Below are positions 6,862-52,950 of a stretch of DNA of 64,000 nt, in pieces. Each line of letters begins with the position of its first letter. The stretch's first letter is position 1. Under the pieces are notes generated by a model. It saw only the letters and a program-made list of their open reading frames with translations, did no database searches and had not been told where the DNA came from. A program made the position numbers and the translations under genes. The stretch comes from Mustelus asterias (Eukaryota). The stretch is taken from NCBI RefSeq assembly GCF_964213995.1, contig NW_027590143.1:1178001-1242000 (forward strand), given 5' to 3'.

Positions 6862-7769
6862 CTAATTTGGCAGTGATTGTGATCCTACCTCGAGGAAGAT
6901 GTGGCCTCTCCAAATGTATCACTTATTACCTGGTATTCATGGCTGTAACGGATCTCCTGGTAATCATCACTGCTGTGATATTTAACCGGATTGTAGGTAT
7001 TTACTTTCCATTCAGCTTCCTGTCCATCACTCCGGTATGTCGTGTTAGTCTTATGCTTATTTATGGGGTCAGGGATTCGTCTGTCTGGGTAACTGTCGCG
7101 TTCACCTTTGATCGATTTGTTGCGATTTGTTGTCAGAAATTGAAAACTAAAGTTTGCACAGAGAAAGCAGCGGCTGTGGTTATTGGAACTGCCTGCGCTC
7201 TCAACTGTATAAGAAATATCCCACTGTACTTTATCTATGAGCCTGCGTTTTTTATCGATGTGACACCATGGTACTGCAACTTAAAAACAACATATTACAC
7301 AACACCTGCTTGGGTCTCATTTGACTGGATTATCGTCATCTTAAATCCTTGTCTTCCATTCATTTTGATTTTACTGTTTAATGCACTGACCGTCAAGCAC
7401 ATCGTTACAGCCAACAGAGCCCGGAGCAGACTCTTGGATCAAAGCAATGGAGAGAATCAGAGAGACCCTGAAGTGGAGAAGAGGCGAAAGTCGATTGTTT
7501 TACTCTTCTGTGTCTCCGGAAGTTTCATCCTGTTATATTCGTTAGTACTTACAACTTTTCTCTGCGTCCAAATTGCGAATGTTAGCTATTTCTCGGGAAC
7601 CAATTACAATAAATCTAATTTTATTCTGGAGGAAGGTGGGTTTATGCTTCAGCTGTTGAGTTCCTGCATTAACCCATTCATTTACGCAGGGACCCAGAGT
7701 AAAGTCAGAGAGGAGTTAAAAATTTGGCTGACATATCCATTCTGTCTAATATTTAAACTATTGAAATAA
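6862..7769 (+). CDS. GPCR-A exon 2: class A 7TM receptor, GPR139/GPR142-like (spliced product 325 aa)
   Basis: Acceptor TTACAG| at 6861 joins exon 1 in frame; TM2 MAVTDL, TM3 FDRFVAIC, TM5 PFILILL, TM7 NPFIY; open to TAA at 7769. Confidence 0.9.
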
Positions 7770-12619: not shown

Positions 12620-15137
12620 TTAAGATTGCAAAGATGATTCTGGATAGGAGCGAAAGAAACAGGGTAGTTGTACTGGGGGACTTTAACTTTACAAATATTG
12701 ACTGGAAAAGCTGTAGTTCGAGTACTTTAGAGGGGTCGGTTTTTGTCTAGTGTGTGCAGGAAGGCTTCCTGATGCACTATGTAGATAGACCTAAAGAGGC
12801 GAGGCCACATTGGATTTGGTACTGGGTAATGAACCAGGCCAGGTGTTAGGTTTGGAGGTAGATGAGCACTTTGGTGACAGTGACCATAATTCGATTACAT
12901 TTACTTTAGCAATGGAAAAGGATAGGTATATACCAAAGGGCAAGAGTTATAGCTGGGGGAAAGGAAATTATGATGCGATTAGGCGAGACATAGCTGGCAT
13001 AGGTTGAGGAAGGAAACTGCAGGGGATGGGCACAATTGTAATTTGGAACTTGTTCAAGGAACAGCGACTACGCGTCCTTGATAAATATGTACCTGTCAGG
13101 CAGGGAGGAAGCAGACATATTGAGGGAACCGTGGTTTACTAAGAAGGTTGAATCTCTTGTGAAGAGGAAGAAGGAGACTTATGTTAAGATGAGACGTGAA
13201 GGCTCAGTTAGGGCGCTTGAGAGTTACAAGTTAGCCAGGAAGGACCGAAAGAAAGAGTTAAGAAGAGCCAGGAGGGGACATGAGACATCTTTCGCAGGTA
13301 GGATCAAGGAAAACCCTAAAGCTTTCTATCGGTATGTCAGGAGTAAAAGAATGACTAGGGTAAGATTAGGGCCAGTCAAGGACAGGAGGGGGAAGTTGTG
13401 CGTGGAGTCTGAAGAGATAGGAGAGGCACTAAATGAATATTTCTCGTCGGTATTCACACTGGAGAGGGACAGTGTTGTTGAGGGGAGTACTGAGATGCAG
13501 GCTGTTGGACTGGATGGGATTGATGTTCATAAGGAGGAGGTGTTAGCAATTCTGGAAAGGGTAAAAATAGATAAGTCCCCTGGGCCGGATGGCATTTCTC
13601 CTAGGATTCTCTGGGAGGTTAGAGAGGAGATTGCAGAGCCTTTGGCTTTGATCTTTGTGTCGTCATTGTCTACAGGAACAGTGCCAGAAGACTGGAGGAT
13701 AGCAAATGTTGTCCCCTTGTTCAAGGAGGGGAATAGGGACAACCCTGGTAATTATAGACCGGTGAGCCTTACTTCTGTTGTGGGCAAAGTATTGGAAAGG
13801 ATTATAAGAGATAGGATTTATAATCACCTAGAAAGGAATAATTTGATTAGGGATAGTCAGCACGGTTTTGTGAAGGGTAGGTCGTGCCTCACAAACCTTA
13901 TTGAGTTCTTTGAGAAGGTGATCAAAGAGGTGGATGAGGGTAAAGCGGTTGATGTGGTGTATATGGATTTCAGCAAAGCGTTTGATAAGTTTCCCCATGG
14001 TAAGTTTTTGCAGAAAGTACGGACACATGGGATTGAGGGTGATTTAGTGGTTTGGATCAGGAATTGGCTAGCTGTAAGAAAACAAAGGGTGGTGGTTGAT
14101 GGGAAATATTCATCCTGGAGTTCAGTTACTGGTGGTGTACCGCAAGGATCTGTTTTGGGGCCACTGCTGTTTGTCATTTTTATTAATGACTTGGATGAGG
14201 GCATGGAAGGATGGATTAGTAAATTTGCGGATGACACTAAAGTCGGTGGAGTTGTAGACAGTGCGGAGGGAAGTGGCAGGTTACAGAGGGACATAGATAA
14301 GCTGCAGAGCTGGGTTGAGAGGTGGCAAATGGAGTTTAATGCGGAAAAGTGTGAGGTGATTCACTTTGGAAGGAGTAACAGGAATACAGAGTACTGGGCT
14401 AGTGGTAAGATACTTGGTAGTGTGGATGAACAGAGGGATCTGGGTGTCCATGTGCATAGATCCCTGAAAGTTGGCACCCAGGTTGATAGGGTTGTTAAGA
14501 AGGCGTACGGTGTGTTAGCTTTTATTGGTAGAGGGATTGAGTTTCGGAGCCAGGAGGTCATGCTGCAACTGTACAAAACTCTGGTGCGGCCGCATTTGGA
14601 GTATTGCGTACAGTTCTGATCGCCGAATTATAGGAAAGATGTGGAAGCGTTGGAAAGGGTGCAGAGGAGATTTACCAGGGATGTTGCTTGGCATGGTGGG
14701 AAAATCGTATGAAGTAAGGCTGAGGGGCTTGAGGTTGTTTTCGTTAGAGAGAAGAAGGTTAAGAGGTGACTTAATAGAGGCATACAAGATGATCAGAGGA
14801 TTAAATAGGGTGCATAGTGAGAACCTTTTTCCTCGGATGGTGTTGGCTAGCACGAGGGGACATAGCTTTAAAGTGAGGGGTGAGAGATATAGGACAGATG
14901 TTCGAGGTAGGTTCTTTACTCAGAGAGTAGTAAGGGCGTGGAATGCCCTGCCTGCAGCAATGTTGGATTCGTCAACGTTGAGAGCGTTCAAGTGGTTATT
15001 GGATAAACATATGGATGATATTGGAATAGTGTAGATTAGAGGGGCTTTATATTGGTACCACTGGTCGGCGCAACATCGAGGGCCGAAGGGCCTGTACTGC
15101 GCTGTAATGTTCTATGTTCTATGTTCTATTTTCTATT
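12620..15137 (+). mobile_element. CR1 LINE, 5'-truncated in the APE domain, with several stops and frameshifts
   Basis: GDFN, DLVL, SDHN, QHGF, DFSKAFD, GVPQGSVLGP and FADD motifs; (TTCTATG)n tail. Confidence 0.96.
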
Positions 15138-15270: not shown

Positions 15271-15475
15271 AGTCCAGTAAGTAGTCTCAAAACACCACAT
15301 TAGAGTTCAACAGGTTTATTTGGTGGCACGAGCTTTCGGAGCTCTGCTCCTTCATCAAGTGAAGGAGTTGCGCTCCGAAAGCTCTTGCTACCAAATAAAC
15401 CTGTTGGAATTTAACCTGGTGTGGTGAGAATTCTTACTGTGCCTATCCCAGTCCAATGCCGGCATCTCCACATCA
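15271..15475. mobile_element. Penelope-like terminal-repeat remnant (fold-back) with 9-bp TSD
   Basis: Long inverted repeat centred near 15358; same sequence as the end of the GIY-YIG element at 55194-55280; TGAGTTGAA at 15262-15270 and 15476-15484. Confidence 0.8.
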
Positions 15476-16187
15476 TGAGTTGAAGGTAATGTAGCCTTGG
15501 GCTTCTGCTGGTCAATTCCATTCTTTACCGTTTAATTTCTCTCTGTGGTAAGAGACATGGATTCATTTTACTGCATGCTCCTCGGAGAAAGGGAATACCC
15601 ACCACACACAGCAACCATGTGGGAACAAAATAACCAAAGGGACTTGTATGGAACTGTAAACGGTGTGGCCATCCTGTAGTTCTGGATCAACTTTTGCAGC
15701 AATAGAATTTGGTCGGATCTGTAGAGAAATCATTAACGCCCTAATTTAAGATATCTGTCGCAGCTCGGTTATTAAAGGAGTGATTGGTAGTTCGAAACAA
15801 TCCAGGAACGGAAATTATACTCTTCTCTCCCCAGCAGCATTCATGCGCAAACATTTGCGGGTAGGTAATGGATCCGTGGGCGCCCATAAAAATGTCTCCC
15901 AGTGTTGCCAACGTAACTTAGTTAATAAATATTCATTTCATACAGATTAAATTAAGTATATACATGTTTCAATTGTGCTATTAAACATAAGATTCAGTGT
16001 TGAAACATTAATTCATGGCTGAACATTTGTTTAAGTTCTATTTTCCCACCCGCTCTCCTTCATTGCCGGAGAGATCAAAAATCTGTCTATCCCACAATAA
16101 AATGTGTTAAATGATGGAGCATCCCGAACTTTCTGGAAGAGAAAATGCCAACGATTCCCAACATTTTGAGTGGAGTAATTTCTCCTC

Positions 16188-16522
16188 ATCGCTTCTCGGC
16201 CTTTTGGCTAAGATCAAGTGTAGTATGGATAGGATGCTGCACTTGGTTGAGGTCGTTAGGTCACATTTAAGCTTCATTTTCATATGAAGCATTTTTTTAA
16301 AGCGGCATCCCGGAATTTTGGCTAAGATGCACATGAGATCAAGCTTTGGAGGAGGAAGACCTGCGCCCACTCCAATCAGCTTGGCTCATGTAGATCAGGC
16401 CCAAGACAGGGGTTGCAGACCCTGTCTTGTCAGCTTGGATCGGGAATGCCTCAAATTGTTGACATTCTGAATTGGACTTCATTTGATTGAACTGGAAAAG
16501 TATGTTTTTTAAAATTCTCTTC
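16188..16522 (+). mobile_element. U2 snRNA-headed SINE-like unit 1
   Basis: Starts with U2 nt 1-39 (ATCGCTTCTCGGCCTTTTGGCTAAGATCAAGTGTAGTAT), then a non-U2 body, a second U2-like head, a hairpin, an A/T-rich end and a target copy. Confidence 0.75.
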
Positions 16523-17066
16523 ATCGCTTCTCGGCCTTTTGGCTAAGATCAAGTGTTAGTATCGACATGCTGTACTTGGTGGAAGTCATAAGGTTACATT
16601 ATAGCTTAATTATAAGCAATTTTTAAAAGCGGCATCTCGGACATTTGGCTAAGATACAAATGAGATCAAGCCTTGGAGGAGGAGCTATGCCTCCTCCAAT
16701 CAGCTTGGATCATGTAGTTCAGGCCCAAGACGGGAGGGGAGAGCCCTGTCTTGTCAGCTTGGATCGGGAATGTCTCAATTTGTTGTGACTCTGAATTGGA
16801 CTTGATTTAGAACATAGAACATAGAACAGTACAGCACAGAACAGGCCCTTCGGCCCACGATGTTGTGCCGAGCTTTATCTGAAACCAAGATCAAGCTATC
16901 CCACTCCCTATCATCCTGGTGTGCTCCATGTGCCTATCCAATAACCGCTTGAATGTTTCTAAAGTGTCTGACTCACTATCACTGCAGGCAGTCCATTCCA
17001 CACCCCAACCACTCTCTGCGTAAACATTTGAATTGGAATAAAAAAACATTTTAAAAAATTCTCCTC
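16523..17066 (+). mobile_element. U2 snRNA-headed SINE-like unit 2 (contains a CR1 3' fragment)
   Basis: Same organisation as unit 1; U2 head starts at 16523. Confidence 0.75.
16809..17024 (-). mobile_element. CR1 3'-end fragment nested in unit 2
   Basis: (AGAACAT)n reverse tail followed by ACAGTACAGCACAGAACAGGCCCTTCGGCCC. Confidence 0.88.
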
Positions 17067-17388
17067 ATCGCTTATCGGCCTTTTGGCTAAGATCAAGTGT
17101 AGTGTCGACATGCTCTACTTGGTTGAAGTCATAAGGTTACAATGTAGCTTCATTATAAGCAATTTTTTAAAGCGGCATATCGGCCTTTTGGCTAAAATGC
17201 AAATGAGATCAAGCCTTGGAGGAGGTGCAATGCCTGCTCCAATTAGCTTGGACCATGTAGATCAAGCCCAAGACAGGACGTGGGAACCATCTGTCGTCAG
17301 CTTGGATCGGGAATGTCTCACTTGCTGAGGCTTTGAATTGGACTTTGAGTGGATTGAATTGGATATATAAACAAAACAAATTCTCCTC
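17067..17388 (+). mobile_element. U2 snRNA-headed SINE-like unit 3
   Basis: U2 head ATCGCTTATCGGCCTTTTGGCTAAGATCAAGTGTAGT; ends in an A-rich tract and AATTCTCCTCATC before CR1 resumes. Confidence 0.75.
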
Positions 17389-18399
17389 ATCTCAGTACTA
17401 AATGTCCTAAAGTCCTCGTCCCTTATCCTGAGACTGTGTCCCATATTTTAAATTCTTTGATATCTCAGAATGCACCCGATTTAATCCATTCATTCTTGTG
17501 TAGGTATCAATGAGATAGTATATCATTCTGCTGAACTCCAGAGAAATTGAGCCCAATTTACCCAACCTCTCATAATAGGACAAGCCCTTCATCTCAGAGA
17601 ATAACCTAGTGAAGTTTTGTTGTACCGTCTCCATTAGAAGTACATCCTGTCTTAAATGCAAAACCCCAAAACTGGACGCAGTATTCCAAATGAGGTATTG
17701 GCAATACCCTGAGCAACTGCAGCAATGCTTCGAAGGTGACAAAAAGTAACTCCGTACAAAAGACTGAAAGGAGAGCGTGACTGCGGATAATTTGCACTGT
17801 GCAAATTCCTGTAATCTGTGTCATGGAGAATTAGGAAGCTAAGATCCTGGTGCCTCTATCCCCTGCCATCTGTGAACTCCCTCTCTTCACACAACCTTGT
17901 GTCCTACAATCCCGATCCTCCCTCCATTCCAGGTAAAGCTCGGTCTCACCAATGTTTTGTGTCTGCATCAAGAAGTTAATTGATTCTAGGTGCTGGACGG
18001 TCAGAGGGAGCTGAAGGAGAGGCAACAACAGAAACAGAAAGAGATGCAACAAGAAAATATTGAACAAAGGATCTGCATCAATTGCTTTCAGTGTCGGATA
18101 TCTGCCTTGTGTGGCCTCATACGTATCACATGAGTTGCAATGATGAGGTTGGTGAGGCTTGGAAATTGAACGTTACACATCAGCAGCTTATGGGACTATT
18201 TAATCTCACTGCCAATTTCTTGTTCCAGTTAACAGCATTCGTGTTTCCACTGGCTAAGAAGTCAATTTTGTTCAAGTTAAACATGACAATTTCAAGGAGA
18301 AACTTGTTTCTGGTGAAAATAAGTCTGAAAAGAAAATGAAAGCCAAAGGTTTCATATATCAATTAGATCTTTTCTTTTAAAAACGAGCAAGCCGTAATT

Positions 18400-18471: not shown

Positions 18472-18682
18472 AAAAAATTCATTCTTGTGCAACAACCATT
18501 AATAGATTTGTGGTCAGTACTCGTGAGGGAGATGAACGACTTTGTGCTTGATTTGGAAATGTCATGTTCAGCGATCAAGAACAGGAATCGGACAGCGATA
18601 GGCTGCAAAGCGCTGACGATAGAGATGGTAATACAAGATCAAATCTGGCGAATAATGCTTACAAAGACCAAAGAACAAAGAA

Positions 18683-19896
18683 AGGTTGACGAAGGAAGGG
18701 CCATGGATGTCGTCTATATGGACTTTAGTAAAGCGTTTGACAAAGTCCCTCATGGTAGGCTGGTGAAAAAGGTTGGATCTTATGGGATAAGGGGGGAGGT
18801 GGCTAGATGGGTGGAGAACTGGCTTGGTCACAGAAGACAGAGGGTGGTAGTGGAAGTGTCTTTTTCCGGCTGGAGGCCTGTGACTAGTGGTGTTCCGCAG
18901 GGCTCTGTATTGGGACCTCTGCTGTTTGTGATTTATATAAACGATCTGGAAGAAGGTGTAACTGGGGTGATCAGTAAGTTTGCGGACGACACAAAATTGG
19001 CAGGACTTGCAGATAGTGAGGAGCATTGTCAGAAGCTACAGAAAGATATAGATAGGCTGGAAATTTGGGCAAAGAAATGGCAGATGGAGTTCAATCCTGA
19101 TCACTGCCAAGTGATACATTTTGGTAGAAATAATGTAGGGAGGAGCTCCACGATAAATGGCAGAACCATAAAGGGTATAGATATGCAGAGGGACCTGGGT
19201 GTGCAAGTCCACAGATCCTTGAAGGTGACGTCACAGGTGGAAAGGGTGGTGAAGAAGGCATATGGCATCCTTGCCTTTATAGCACGGGGCATAGAGTATA
19301 AAAGTTGGGGTCTGATGTTGCAGATGTATAGAACGTTGGTTCGGCCGCATTTGGAATACTGCGTCCAGTTCTGACCGCCACAGGACCAGAAGGGCGTGGA
19401 GGCTTTGGAGAGAGTACAGAGGAGGTTTACCAGGATGTTGCCTGGTATGGAGGGGCTTAGTTATGAGGAGAGATTGGGTAAACTGGGGTTGTTCTCCCTG
19501 GAAAGACGGAGGATGAGGGGAGACTTAATAGAGGTATATAAAATTATGAAAGGCATAGATAGGGTGAACGGTGGGAAGCTTTTCCCCAGGTCGGTGGTGA
19601 CGTTCACGAGGGGTCATAGGTTCAAGGTGAAGGGGCGGGGGGGGGGGGGGGAGAGGTTTATCACAGATATCAGAAGGACATATTTTACACAGAGGGTGGT
19701 TGGGGCCTGGAATGCGCTGCCAGGCAAGGTGGTGGAGGCGGACACACTGGGAACGTTTAAGACTTATCTAGACAGCCATATGAACGGAGTGGGAATGGAG
19801 GGATACAAAAGAATGGTCTAGTTTGGACCAGGGAGCGGCACGGGCTTGGAGGGCCGAAGGGCCTGTTCCTGTGCTGTATTGTTCTTTGTTCTTTGT
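18683..19896 (+). mobile_element. CR1 LINE, 5'-truncated
   Basis: RT motifs DFSKAFD, GVPQGSVLGP, FADD; one stop at 19372-19374; (TTCTTTG)n tail. Confidence 0.95.
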
Positions 19897-20740: not shown

Positions 20741-21013
20741 TACTTTTTGTAGTGTTTCTTATTTCCACTGACAGCATTATATCCCCGATCTCGGTCCAAA
20801 TATGATACTAAATGATTTACAAACAAACTTCTCGCTGAATTAAGCACCAAACTCTTCGACTTCCAATGGAGTACAGGCAGCTTTCATTCAGAAACCAGTA
20901 CCTGATGTATTCACAAAGCGGCATGGAGAAAGACTCAGTTTAGGCGGTGTCACTGCCGGAGGAATGGAGAGCTGAAATTCACCCAGGAAAGCAGAAAAGT
21001 TTAAAAACAATGA

Positions 21014-21086
21014 CACCCGAAGTGGGGCTCAAACCCACGACCCTAACATTAAGAGTCTCATGCTCTACCGACTGAGCTAGCCAAGC
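21014..21086 (-). pseudogene. tRNA-Lys(CTT)-derived, probably a pseudogene
   Basis: Full-length match to vertebrate Lys-CTT, but T loop TTCG>TTTG and anticodon-stem mismatches. Confidence 0.85.
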
Positions 21087-21217
21087 ACATTGCGGCAGCT
21101 GTGCTTCAAGCCCCAAAATACGGGGACCACAAACGTGCTTTTCCATCTGGCATCTCAGATTGTTCAAATTTCAAAGTGGCGAATACAGTCGACCTACAGA
21201 ATCGCCAAGGTTACAAT

Positions 21218-24149: not shown

Positions 24150-24221
24150 GGCTCCATAGCTCAGTGGTTAGAGCCTTAGTTTTGCAAACCAGGGCCGCAA
24201 GTTCACTTGTCGTTGGAGCCT
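24150..24221 (+). pseudogene. tRNA-Thr(TGT)-derived pseudogene (loop now reads TGC)
   Basis: GGCTCCATAGCTCAGTGGTTAGAGC..AAACCAGGG..TGGAGCCT; T arm disrupted. Confidence 0.8.
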
Positions 24222-28655: not shown

Positions 28656-28727
28656 TGTTCCGTGATGTAATGGTGAGCACTCTGGACTGTGAATCCAGCT
28701 ATCCGAGTTCACATTTCGTTGGAACCT
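28656..28727 (+). pseudogene. tRNA-Gln-derived gene with GTG in the anticodon loop, probably a pseudogene
   Basis: GTAATGGTGAGCACTCTGGACTGTGAATCCAG..GGAACCT; position 1, A-box and B-box changes. Confidence 0.8.
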
Positions 28728-32230: not shown

Positions 32231-32295
32231 AGCCGGACGTGGGGCTCGACCGTGAGATTAAGAGTCTCATGCTCTACCGACTGAGCTAGCCGGGC
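32231..32295 (-). pseudogene. tRNA-Lys(CTT) pseudogene with a T-arm deletion
   Basis: 5' two-thirds matches Lys-CTT (GCCCGGCTAGCTCAGTCGGTAGAGCATGAGACTCTTAATCTCA); ~8 nt missing from the T arm. Confidence 0.88.
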
Positions 32296-37464: not shown

Positions 37465-39938
37465 AGGGCAATTGTTATGGGGGATTTTAACTTGACTAAT
37501 ATTGACTGGAATTGTTATAGCTCTAGCTCGTTAGAGGGGTCAGTTTTTGTTCAAAGCGTGCAGGAAGGTTTTTTGACTCAGTATGTAGACAGGCCAACTA
37601 GAGGTGAGGCTATATTGGATCTGGTGCTGGGAAATGAGCCAGACCAGGTGCTAGACTTGGAAGTTGGTGTGCATTTTGGTGATAGTGACCACAATTCGGT
37701 TACGTTCACCTTAGTGATGGAAAGGGATAGGCATGAACCTCGGGCCAGTGGTTTTAGCTGGGGGAAGGGTAATTATGAGGCTATTAGGAGAGAATTAGGA
37801 AACATAGGTTGGACTAGGAGATTACAGGGACTGGGAACGTCCGACATGTGGAGTTTTTTCAAGGAGCAGCTACTGCGAGTCTGTGATAGGTATGTCCCTG
37901 TCAGGCAAGGAGGAATTGGTAGGGCTAGGGAACCGTGGTGCACCAAAAAAGTTTCTTTGTTGGTTAAAAAGAAAAAGGAGGCTTATGTTCGGATGAGACG
38001 TGAGCACTCGGGTAGTGCACTAGAAAGCTTTAGATTGGCTAAGAGGGAGTTGAAGAGCGAGCTTAGAAGGGCTAAAAGGGGACATGAGAAGACTTTGGCG
38101 GATAGGGTTAAAGAGAATCCTAAGGCGTTCTATAGGTATGTCAAGAACAGAAGGTTGGTTAGGGCAAGTTTAGGGCCAGTTATAGATGGCAGAGGGAAGT
38201 TATGTGTGGAACCGGAGGAGATTGGTGAAGCATTGAACCAATATTTCTCTTCGGTGTTCACGCAAGGGGACATGAATATAGCTGAGGAGGACACTGGGTT
38301 GCAAGGGAGTAGAATAGACAGTATTACAGTTGATAAGGAGGATGTGCAGGATATTCTGGAGGGTCTGAAAATAGATAAATCCCCTGGTCCGGATGGGATT
38401 TATCCAAGGATTCTCTGGGAGGCAAGAGAAGTGATTGCAGAGCCTCTGGCTCTGATCTTCAGGTCGTCGTTGGCCTCTGGTGTAGTACCAGAGGATTGGA
38501 GGTTAGCGAATGTTGTCCCATTGTTTAAGAAGGGGAACAGAGACTTCCCCGGGAATTATAGACCGGTGAGTCTCACTTCTGTTGTCGGCAAGATGTTGGA
38601 AAAAATTATATGGGATAGGATTTATAGTAATTTGGAGAGTAATGAATTGATAGGTGATAGTCAGCATGGTTTTGTGGCAGGTAGGTCGTGCCTTACTAAC
38701 CTTATTGAGTTTTTTGAGAAAGTGACCAAGGAGGTGGATGGGGGCAAGGCAGTGGACGTGGTATATATGGATTTTAGTAAGGCGTTTGATAAGGTTCACC
38801 ATGGTAGGCTTCTGCAGAAAATGCAGATGTATGGGATTGGGGGTGATCTAGGAAATTGGATCAGGAATTGGCTAGCGGATAGGAAACAGAGGGTGGTGGT
38901 TGATAGTAAATATTCATCATGGAGTGCGGTTACAAGTGGTGTACCTCAGGGATCTGTTTTGGGGCCACTGCTGTTTGTAATATTTATTAATGATCTGGAT
39001 GAGGGTATAGTTGGGTGGATTAGCAAATTTGCTGATGACACCAAAGTCGGTGGTGTGGTAGACAGTGAGGAAGGGTGTCGTAGTTTGCAGGAAGACTTAG
39101 ACAGGTTGCAAAGTTGGGCCGAGAGGTGGCGGATGGAGTTTAATGCGGAGAAGTGTGAGGTAATTCACTTTGGTAGGAATAACAGATGTGTTGAGTATAG
39201 GGCTAACGGGAGGACTTTGAATAGTGTGGAGGAGCAGAGGGATCTAGGTGTATGTGTGCATAGATCCCTGAAAGTTGGGAATCAAGTAGATAAGGTTGTT
39301 AAGAAGGCATATGGTGTCTTGGCGTTTATTGGTAGGGGGATTGAATTTAGGAGTCGTAGCGTTATGTTGCAACTGTACACAACTCTGGTGCGGCCGCACT
39401 TGGAGTACTGTGTGCAGTTCTGGTCCCCACATTACAGGAAGGATGTGGAGGCTTTGGAGAGGGTGCAGAGGAGGTTTACCAGGATGTTGCCTGGTATGGA
39501 GGGGAGATCCTATGAGGAGAGGCTGAGGGATTTGGGATTGTTTTCGCTGGAAAGGCGGAGGCTAAGAGGGGATCTTATTGAAACATATAAGATGATTAGA
39601 GGTTTAGATAGGGTGGATAGTGATAGCCTTTTTCCTCTGATGGAGAAATCCAGCACGAGGGGGCATGGCTTTAAATTGAGGGGGGGTAGTTATAGAACCG
39701 ATGTCAGGGGTAGGTTCTTTACCCAGAGGGTGGTGAGGGATTGGAATGCCCTGCCAGCATCAGTAGTAAATGCGCCTAGTTTGGGGGCGTTTAAGAGATC
39801 CGTAGATAGGTTCATGGACGAAAAGAAATTGGTTTAGGTTGGAGGGTCACAGTTTTTTTTTTTAACTGGTCGGTGCAACATCGTGGGCCGAAGGGCCTGT
39901 TCTGCGCTGTAATGTTCTATGTTCTATGTTCTATGTTC
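37465..39938 (+). mobile_element. Young CR1 LINE, 5'-truncated, with an uninterrupted 786-aa ORF2 fragment (APE C-terminus and RT)
   Basis: ORF 37477..39837: GDFN, LDLVL, SDHN, PGPDG, QHGF, DFSKAFD, GVPQGSVLGP, FADD; (TTCTATG)n tail. Confidence 0.97.
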
Positions 39939-40130: not shown

Positions 40131-41091
40131 GAAGAACAAAGAACAGGACAGCACAGGAAACAGGCCCTTCGGCCCTCCAAGCCTGTGCCGCTCATTGGTC
40201 CAACTAGACCATTCGTTTGTATCCCTCCATTCCCAGACTGCTCATGTGACCATCCAGGTAAGTCTTAAACGATGTCAGCGCGTCTGCCTCCACCGCCCTA
40301 CTTGGCAGCGCATTCCAGGCCCCCACCACTCTCTGTGTAAAAAACGTCCCTCTGATATCTGAGTTATACCTCGTCCCTCTCACCTTGAGCCCGTGACCCC
40401 TCGTGATCGTCACCTCCGACCTGGGAAAAAGCTTCCCACTGTTCACCCTATCTATACCCTTCATAATTTTGTACACCTCTATTAGGTCTCCCCTCATGCT
40501 CCGTCTTTCCAGGGAGAACAACCCCAGTTTACCCACTCTCTCCTCATAGCTCAGACCCTCCATACCAGGCAACATCCTAGTAAACCTTCTCTGCACCCTC
40601 TCTAAAGCCTCCACGTCCTTCTGGTAGTGCGGCGACCAGAATTGGACGCAGTACTCCAATTGTGGCCTAACCAGCGTTCTATACAGACGCAACATCAGAC
40701 TCCAGCTTTTATACTCTATACCCCGTCCTTTAAACGCAAACATACCATATGCCTTCTTCACCACCTTCTCCACCTGTGCTGCTGCCTTCAAGGATTTGTG
40801 AACTTGCACACCTAGGTCCCTCTGTGTTTCTATACTCTTGATGGCTCTGCCATTTATTGTATAACTTCCCCCTACATTAAATCTTCCAAAATGCATCACT
40901 TCGCATTTACCTGGATTAAATTCCATCTGCCATTTCTCCGCCCAATTTTCCAGCCTATCTATATCCTGCTGTATTGTCCGACAATGTTCATCACTATCCG
41001 CAAGTCCAGCCACCTTCGTGTCATCCGCAAACTTGCTGATAACACCAGTTACCCCTTCTTCCAAATCATTTATATACATCACAAATAGCAG
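40131..41091 (-). mobile_element. Young CR1 LINE, 5'-truncated
   Basis: Open 292-aa ORF 40204..41082 with FADD; (TTCTTTG)n tail. Confidence 0.96.
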
Positions 41092-44714: not shown

Positions 44715-44786
44715 GGGTCTATGTTGTAATGGTGAGCACTCTGGACTCTGAATCCAGTGATCCGAGCTCAAATCTCGATGGAACCT
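44715..44786 (+). tRNA. tRNA-Gln(CTG)-like, the best preserved Gln copy but function doubtful
   Basis: Intact anticodon arm CTGGA CTCTGAA TCCAG; T54>C in the B box (GAGCTCAAATC) and acceptor mismatches. Confidence 0.6.
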
Positions 44787-45977: not shown

Positions 45978-46049
45978 GGTTCTGTGTTGTAATGGCCAGA
46001 ACTCTGGACTCTGAATCCAGCGATCCAAGTTTAGATCTTGGTGGGATCT
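45978..46049 (+). pseudogene. tRNA-Gln(CTG)-derived pseudogene
   Basis: ACTCTGGACTCTGAATCCAGCGATCC; T loop mutated. Confidence 0.8.
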
Positions 46050-51225: not shown

Positions 51226-52036
51226 ATAATGCAAACAGTTATCCTTTGATGAATGATTGTTATTAATCCCGAACTCACAACAATTTGTGCCTGCTCCCAG
51301 TGCCAAACACTCATTGGCTCCGCCCGGGAATCCTATTTCACATTTGCTGCTCCTGATTGCTTGATTCCTTTCTGTCCCAGAACCCAGTATCGTTTCAAAT
51401 TGTTCTGTTCTCTGCAAAGAGTCAAGCAAAATAACTCGTCAAATCTTTCGTTTCATATTTCACCGGATATTTCAGATGATTATCAGGGATACAATTCAGT
51501 CTTGGCGCTGCTTCCTAAATCTGCAAGTTCCGACAACTGCTAACAATTGTCCTTTTATTTGCCTTTGTTTGAGGATTTATTCGAGAAAATTCACTGCAAA
51601 CGTTTCCAAAAGTAAATAATTTTGCTGTCATTCATGGAGCCATATTTAATACCCATTGAAGTATAATCCGTGACCATATTAACATCCGCACTTATTATTG
51701 GGTATTTTCCAATTTATCTTCTCCAATATGTTTTAATTAGTTGTTTACATGTCATTGTATTGTGCATTTAATTATTCAGTTTTGGTTTTGATATGCTTTC
51801 CATTTCGCATTATTCCTCTCTCAGTTCTCATTAAAAATGCAATCACTTTCGTTAACATTCCTTATTATTAATAAAGATATTGTTATTAAGCAGAAACAAG
51901 TGTCCCTGAGATCAGGTATAAATGTTGCACCTATCACACAGAATTCAACATCATGGATTGTTTTGTTGCGATGAATGTTCCACTTCCCATGCTTCGTCAT
52001 GCACAAATTCTCACAATCTCTTTCCCTCTATTACAG

Positions 52037-52950
52037 CTAACACAGCAGTGATTATGGTCCTCGCAAGAAAAAGTTGTGGTCTCTCCAGATGTATCACGTA
52101 TTACCTTGTGTCCATAGCGGTGGTGGATCTCCTGCACATAATATCTGCTGTAATATTAAACCGGATTGCGGGAATCTTTTTTCCATTGAGCTTCTTGTCT
52201 GTCACACCAGTTTGCAGCGTCCGTACAGTCCTACATTCTACCGCCATGGACAACTCTGTCTGGTTAACCGTCGCTTTCACGTTTGATAGATTTGTGGCTA
52301 TTTGTTGCCAGAAGCTCAAAGTTAAATATTGGAATGAAAATGTGGCCACGTGGGTCATTGGAATCGTGTCCACACTCGCCTGTGTAAAAAATGTCTTTGT
52401 GTACTTTGTTTATGAACCCCTGTACATAATTGACGATGTACCCTGGTTCTGCAATGTAAAGTTAATATTTTACACATCCCCTTTCTGGGCTGCTTATGAC
52501 TTGATGCGTTGTATTGTAACTCCTATCCTTCCATTCATTTTGATTTTGCTGCTGAATGCTCTTACTGTAAGACACATTCTAGCGGCCAATAGAGCCCGCA
52601 GGAGACTCCGGGCCCAGAACAATGGAAAGAATCAGAGTGACCCAGAGGTGGAGAAGCGGAAAAAGCCCATTGTTTTACTCTTCACCATTTCAGGAAATTT
52701 CATCCTGTTATACTTGTTATTTTTTATAACTATCATCTATGTCCGAATTGCGAAAGTTACTTATTTCTCAGGTTCTGGTTTCAGTAATACATTTAATCTT
52801 GAGGAAACTGGATATATGCTTCTGTTTTTGTGTTCCTGCATCAACCCATTGATTTATGCTGGGACCCAGAGTAAAATCAGAGCCGAGTTAAAGAATTTGG
52901 TGAAATATCCACTCAAACAATTTGTTAATTTTTTTAAATTTTGCGCATAG
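52037..52950 (+). CDS. GPCR-B exon 2: class A 7TM receptor, GPR139/GPR142-like (spliced product 327 aa)
   Basis: Acceptor TTACAG| at 52036, in frame with exon 1; FDRFVAIC, PFILILL, NPLIY; open to TAG at 52950. Confidence 0.9.

Follow-up and report, generated by a model that had tools for sequence, protein, structure and literature searches.

The locus described here raises the question of how three short sequences, each opening with the first nucleotides of the U2 small nuclear RNA (snRNA), came to stand head to tail inside a single decayed CR1 retrotransposon of the shark Mustelus asterias. The array lies in a 64,000-nucleotide stretch of RefSeq assembly GCF_964213995.1 (contig NW_027590143.1, positions 1,178,001 to 1,242,000 of the forward strand), which we refer to as the window and whose first letter is position 1 for all coordinates below. 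An original prediction, made from the sequence alone, had proposed a snRNA-derived, possibly target-specific short interspersed element (SINE). The answer that we consider probable, if by no means secure, is that each unit is a copy of a non-coding retroposon, short and U2-headed, that resembles the SINEU elements of crocodilians and was placed by target-primed reverse transcription, most likely through a Keno-type, U2-targeting long interspersed element (LINE) of the Tx1 clade; the evidence for this comes from one locus and one outside homologue.

Sequence reading, a repeat search, Tandem Repeats Finder (TRF) and MAFFT alignment all recover three head-to-tail units on the plus strand, starting at 16188, 16523 and 17067 as originally predicted. 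Unit 1 (16188..16514) consists of U2 nt 1–39, a hairpin-rich body and an A/T-rich tail, and has the most stable fold of the three; unit 2 (16523..17058) is interrupted; unit 3 (17067..17380) carries a head with two substitutions, the most broken stems in its body and an A-rich tail. TRF describes the array as 1.9 copies of a 324-nt period with 83% matches, and the repeat search resolves the units into families D1 to D5 and a short host repeat, D6, that occurs four times. The mean column identity of the MAFFT alignment is 85%. Pairwise identities from blastn are 87% for units 2 and 3, 83% for units 1 and 2, and 78% for units 1 and 3, in keeping with the expectation that the units would be clearly diverged.

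Leaving aside the insert in unit 2, the units measure 314–327 nt, compared with a predicted size of about 322–335 bp; unit 2 as it stands extends over 536 bp only because a CR1 fragment sits in its 3′ part. This fragment, a 5′-truncated CR1 3′ end on the minus strand at approximately 16809..17024, separates the 5′ part of the unit (16523–16808) from its 3′ tail (17025–17058) and is a later insertion. The left end of the fragment carries a (TAGAACA)n tail (TRF 16808–16828, period 7); the fragment reads ..FTQRVVGVWNGLP.. (ORF, open reading frame, 16959..17111, minus strand) and is flanked by a repeat of about 5 nt, (G/C)ATTT. Its 5′ truncation falls at ..FTQRVV.., one to two codons from the point at which the host CR1 is split; this is probably a coincidence, short 3′ CR1 fragments being common.

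None of the units contains a long ORF, the longest being of 81 amino acids (aa). Each ends in an A/T-rich tail of 17–21 nt that differs between units and in none is a pure run of A; the three tails are about 67% alignable (D4). Every unit also contains a second, internal module that resembles the U2 head, located in unit 1 at about 16303–16345 on the plus strand and in unit 3 matching head nt 4–27 at 22 of 24 positions. On the 3′ side of this module follow about 170 nt of hairpin-rich sequence and then the tail, and some 170 nt of each unit bear no likeness to U2.

The heads themselves score 48.7, 45.9 and 45.7 bits against the Rfam U2 model in units 1, 2 and 3, respectively (E values 7e-8 to 3.5e-7; gathering score 46). 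Each unit begins exactly at U2 nt 1, and alignment with high posterior probability covers model nt 1–39 in unit 1 and 1–40 in units 2 and 3, which puts the ends of the heads at or just past the predicted end at about nt 37–39. Beyond nt 40 the model is skipped or aligned with low posterior probability in all units, and stems IIa/IIb, the Sm site and stems III/IV are not matched. Within the heads there are 0, 1 and 2 substitutions in units 1, 2 and 3. As reported by Kojima and Jurka (2015; PMC4640811), the downstream U2 sequence in Utopia insertions begins at nt 39, and the 3′ flank of Keno is identical. The end of the shark heads at nt 39/40 thus lies within 1–2 nt of the published Keno/Utopia junction (nt 38|39), a numbering that may itself shift by 1–2 nt between species. 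A head running from the start of U2 to this junction is what would be expected of the transcript of an element residing in a U2 gene at the Keno site and read from the external U2 promoter.

The same comparison bears on an immobile origin, in which the units would be degenerate U2 variant genes or pseudogenes arrayed locally, or else a small satellite derived from U2. In its favor, cmscan aligns each unit along the full 192-nt U2 model at a score close to the gathering threshold, a run of T stands at the place expected of the Sm site and is followed by a terminal hairpin, and U2-derived satellites are mentioned in PMC4640811. Such an origin, however, is hard to reconcile with alignments that are skipped or of low posterior probability past nt 40, with the second partial head and the roughly 170 nt without U2 likeness in the units, with the interruption of a CR1 ORF by a clean target duplication, with the presence of host target sequence between the units or with a total of only three of them. 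We consider an immobile origin of either kind very improbable.

The host of the array is a CR1 copy on the minus strand. Its ORF2 part upstream of the insertion point occupies 17392..17742 (..FTRLFSEMKGLSYYERLGKLG.. to ..FSTEMRR; ORF 17407..17742, minus strand), and the C-terminal part downstream of it 16031..16179 (..NYSTQNVGNRW..IDRFL..; tblastn row 16198–16076). Read on the minus strand as ..FSTEMRR and MRRNYSTQNVGNRW..IDRFL, the flanks match the ORF2 C terminus of a 786-aa CR1 ORF in the window, and because they join as one ORF2 C terminus, the array interrupts a single CR1 copy. The split of a minus-strand CR1 had been foreseen, and both flanks indeed translate as a contiguous ORF2 end.

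An 11-nt host sequence stands on the plus strand at 16180..16190, 16515..16525 (with one C>T change), 17059..17069 and 17381..17391, that is, before, between and after the units, the last copy running on into the right CR1 flank. The four occurrences had been predicted correctly, but the duplicated length, given as 13–14 nt, comes to 11 nt by sequence reading. Tail A's stand before copies 2 to 4, where the third T of the left flank is missing. At the 5′ junctions there is a 3-nt microhomology, the last three bases of the target being also U2 nt 1–3 (as at copy 1), so that the end of the repeat overlaps the U2 start as had been claimed. Paralogous CR1 copies in the window carry the target sequence once and uninterrupted, and so represent the empty site. 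Target-primed reverse transcription is recognized by a duplicated target, an A-rich 3′ end and a 5′ end that coincides exactly with a transcription start. The 11-nt duplication relative to the empty CR1 sites, the A/T-rich tails, the exact start at nt 1 and the lack of a long ORF agree with the proposal that these are retroposed, U2-headed short elements.

Retroposition alone would also be served by independent chimeric retrocopies, formed by a LINE reverse transcriptase switching template onto U2 snRNA, as in the U6 and U2 chimeras made by L1, with no self-propagating family behind them. Template switching has been invoked for the addition of heads in SINEU (PMC4494074). Yet the nt 39/40 junction, the internal second head and the body are common to all three units, which independent switches would not yield, and the CR1 flanks are contiguous and on the opposite strand, hence target and not template. 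The latter observation rules out a template-switch chimera that includes the flanking CR1, and to independent chimeras in general we give very little credence.

What distinguishes this CR1 copy becomes visible when the rebuilt empty site is aligned, by eye and post hoc, to the Rfam U2 consensus. Host positions 16169–16179 match U2 nt 30–39 at 9 of 10 positions once a 1-nt gap is allowed; the 11-nt duplication agrees with U2 nt 40–50 at 7 of 11, the four mismatches being pyrimidine for pyrimidine or C for G; and past a 2-nt gap, AG corresponds to nt 51–52. The left edge of the duplication, where the bottom strand would have been nicked, falls at the equivalent of U2 nt 39|40, within 1–2 nt of the published junction. 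The probability of such a likeness by chance is about 1e-3 by a rough analytic estimate (not a simulation) that allows for gaps and a few registers. The upstream U2-like half is present only in the host CR1 copy, whose codons read ..NYST.. where other copies have ..NFFS.. or ..RFFT...

These alignments bear on what the element recognizes. The original prediction had suggested specificity for the CR1 site, but none of the 14 other CR1 copies in the window is occupied at the homologous codons, all of them running through uninterrupted, and for this window a CR1-specific target was dropped. From the sequence resemblance we read the target instead as a putative U2 look-alike (nt 30–52) and not as CR1 as such. 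The vacancy of the 14 other copies would then be explained because only the host copy had drifted to the U2-like upstream half. A crocodilian case provides a lead, and only that: the 16-nt target-site duplication (TSD) of SINEU-3 in Mariner-N4_AMi appears to match U2 nt 40–55 at 10 of 16 positions, with 9 of 11 in the core and a left edge that falls at nt 39|40 (by eye; printed orientation not known), a likeness of which the main text of PMC4494074 makes no mention.

In the mechanism that we favor, master copies would reside inside true U2 genes at the Keno/Utopia site, around nt 38–40. Transcription from the external U2 promoter would make each RNA open at U2 nt 1, with nt 1–39/40 ahead of the body. 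The machinery of a putative partner LINE would nick U2-like sequences, and a decayed CR1 copy that had drifted to a look-alike of U2 nt 30–52 would have been nicked at the equivalent position, producing the 11-nt duplication and a 5′ junction with 3-nt microhomology. The units would be stacked, with target sequence between them, because the upstream target copy retains the U2 look-alike and could be struck again.

That the units were either inserted repeatedly or amplified in place had been left as a choice by the original prediction, and the distribution of differences among them settles it in part. Only 2 of 39 columns are variable in the head, versus 63 of 247 in the body (Fisher p = 0.0034), and of 248 sliding windows of its size no other varies so little. 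The low variation of the head favors separate insertions. A single insertion that was duplicated and then decayed neutrally is disfavored by this contrast between head and body; the pattern fits masters whose head is held true to U2 while the body drifts, as would happen to masters residing in arrays of U2 genes, with units derived from them at different times.

Copying in place would require one U2-headed insertion followed by unequal exchange or slippage between the 11-nt target copies, with all differences arising through later decay. Several observations accommodate it: all four target copies have the same boundaries, every unit extends in full from U2 nt 1, the A/T-rich tails of the units align at about two-thirds identity, a relative-rate test does not reject a clock, and the three units are nearer to each other than to the outside homologue (P0121, described below). 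In addition, the other 14 CR1 copies of the window have not been hit once, and three separate hits at this one call for some special explanation. Neutral decay should nevertheless strike head and body alike, contrary to the contrast just given; unequal exchange is poorly served by a repeat of only 11 nt; and the same sandwich layout is common in crocodilian SINEU-3, where it is read as sequential insertion (PMC4494074). We regard copying in place as conceivable but doubtful, and successive insertion as roughly twice as credible.

Under successive insertion, unit 3 is predicted to have arrived first and unit 1 last because the upstream target copy alone keeps the U2-like upstream half. The order that we infer, from unit 3 as the oldest to unit 1 as the youngest, agrees with the gradient of head changes and with that of the fold z-scores, which are −4.23, −2.87 and −1.94 for units 1, 2 and 3. 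With dinucleotide shuffling, the values are −3.10 for unit 1 and −1.57 for unit 3. Of 63 consensus base pairs, units 1, 2 and 3 retain 59, 60 and 56. Variable columns number 20 of 125 in predicted stems versus 37 of 112 elsewhere, a comparison biased by the prediction of the structure from the same alignment.

The elements that these units resemble most are the SINEU of crocodilians, which the original prediction had named; it had also named Keno and Utopia as elements that target U2 genes near the head's end, and PMC4494074 and PMC4640811 bear out both statements. As described by Kojima (2015, Genome Biol Evol 7:1702; PMC4494074), SINEU (SINEU-1, -2 and -3) are short retroposons that open with a head from U1 or U2 and end in poly(A); their TSDs measure about 10–16 nt, heads have been added recurrently at the 5′ end, and their internal oligo-T argues against transcription by RNA polymerase III (Pol III). 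With Keno-related Tx1-Mar LINEs, of which some have U1 or U2 heads themselves, they have in common a preferred target in Mariner-N4_AMi. Where copies stand in tandem, "sandwiching a TSD", the arrangement is attributed to successive insertions driven by Tx1. That report detected no SINEU outside crocodilians. In the literature that we searched, which leaves Repbase Reports and Dfam outside, we found no report of snRNA-headed SINEs in sharks, and prior cataloguing is possible.

The shark units agree with SINEU in being short (<500 bp), non-coding retroposons with a U2-derived 5′ head; in carrying more than one head-derived module, which matches recurrent 5′ addition; in an internal T-run, which argues against Pol III; in a 3′ end that is A-rich, though in no unit a pure run of A, and an 11-nt TSD within the SINEU range of about 10–16 nt; and in tandem copies that sandwich a TSD at a site inside another transposon. 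They differ in host, and the likeness is one of architecture. Whereas SINEU-3 combines a 32-nt head with an 83-nt piece from the middle of U2, the shark head is exactly nt 1 to 39/40; the target there is Mariner-N4_AMi and here a decayed CR1; and PMC4494074 favors head acquisition by template switching, where we favor co-transcription from a U2 gene. The best reading of this comparison is that the units are a shark counterpart of SINEU, with the same architecture in kind.

Keno (Tx1 clade, APE endonuclease) and Utopia (NeSL clade, restriction-like endonuclease) are linked to the array by their U2 junction at nt 38|39, 1–2 nt from both the shark head end and the putative CR1 nick (PMC4640811). 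The same source describes a tandem insertion of Utopia-1_NVit in its target, as in the shark array, and, in the legend of its S4 Fig, off-target insertions of crocodilian Utopia at U2-like sequences. Both are autonomous LINEs within U2 genes, in contrast to the shark units, which are of about 320 nt, non-coding and outside any U2 gene. By analogy only, R2 in 28S ribosomal DNA (rDNA) offers a parallel: it relies on the target gene for its transcription, and formation of the 5′ junction can be aided by target sequence from upstream that the RNA carries at its 5′ end (PMC4494074, section 20).

Copies beyond the array were sought in several ways. The only outside homologue is P0121, a 74-aa ORF on a 1548-bp JGI/IMG contig that is 62% identical to a unit ORF over 50 residues (E 4.6e-9) and its sole look-alike among 1.84 billion protein representatives. 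The homology extends over the body of the unit and takes in the internal head-like module; it shows the repeat to be present in a second data set, but nothing further. The contig points to cartilaginous-fish host DNA in that metagenome sample. Two homologous-protein searches with unit ORFs returned no candidate, two scans of metagenome contigs with conserved body motifs returned 0 matches, and blastn of the remaining ~62 kb of the window found no further unit copy. A scan of genome contigs gave 19 bacterial matches to an 18-mer, compared with about 17 estimated by chance, and was disregarded. A search of sequencing runs on sampled words listed 23 runs; at least a quarter of the words occurred in four of these, from one organism and study.

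A number of points weigh against the reading of the units as SINEU-like retroposons mobilized by a U2-targeting LINE. The evidence comes from a single locus, from which family status, independent TSDs and the generality of a U2-like target are predictions. The alignment of the target with U2 was made by eye and post hoc, it requires gaps at three positions, and in its downstream half pyrimidine largely stands for pyrimidine. Because cmscan can stretch a weak U2 match past nt 40 in unit 3, the head may be the better-kept part of a longer, degenerate U2 copy and not mark a junction. Nor does the window supply the machinery: of 9 ORFs compared with the 786-aa CR1 ORF, 7 match and all of these are of CR1 type, none being of Tx1, which rules out a partner LINE within the window, and blastn of the unit, with nothing outside the array, found no LINE in the window that shares its 3′ end. 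As for the history of the array, the relative-rate test between units 2 and 3 gives 13 versus 22 private changes (p = 0.13–0.18, not significant), no compensatory base pairs were seen across the three units, CpG counts favor neither separate insertion nor copying in place, and the alignability of the tails also fits duplication or a templated tail.

The remainder of the window is crowded with CR1 of at least two subfamilies, at 13078–15136, 18487–19821, 37477–39837, 40204–41082, 719–1519 and other positions, with C termini that read ..DVRGRFFTQRVV.. or ..E(L/M)RRNFFSQRVV... The 786-aa ORF is CR1; among the matches listed, its closest are on short ENA and JGI contigs (81–88% identity), with a 68% match in Scyliorhinus torazame. 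Downstream of a plus-strand CR1 that ends in an (ATGTTCT)n tail (15107–15136) lies a near-perfect 73-nt hairpin, 15321–15393, with a score of 34.4 bits for Rfam mir-1597, far under the gathering score of 93. Six Rfam tRNA matches of 29.7–42.8 bits occur at 21012–21087, 24150–24221, 28656–28727, 32231–32295, 44715–44786 and 45978–46049. ARAGORN calls only one of them, as tRNA-Lys(CTT); the other five may be heads of tRNA-derived SINEs or decayed genes. There are also two intronless rhodopsin-family G protein-coupled receptor ORFs, at 6867–7769 and 51922–52950, each with 67.6 bits for Pfam 7tm_1.

For annotation, the array carries a practical consequence: with scores that sit at the Rfam U2 threshold, the units will be mistaken for U2 genes. 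For the biology of the family, SINEU is the only described SINE-like class with spliceosomal-RNA heads; in the literature searched it is reported from crocodilians alone, and its transcription is an open question. As a tentative and broader proposal, in which we place less confidence than in the nature of the units themselves, sharks may host a living or recently living U2-parasitic system, whose short elements would take their promoter and first 39–40 nt from U2 genes, home to mimics of U2 nt 30–52 and pile up since each insertion preserves the mimic. The snRNA heads of SINEU-type elements would then be remnants of the target gene and not products of template switching, and the target of crocodilian SINEU and Tx1-Mar in Mariner-N4_AMi would also be a U2 mimic. 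If this is true, such elements borrow both promoter and head from the gene that they target and their homing follows likeness to U2, which would give a concrete answer to how SINEU are transcribed, would explain the tandem stacking and would carry the U2-parasitic life style back to the cartilaginous fishes.

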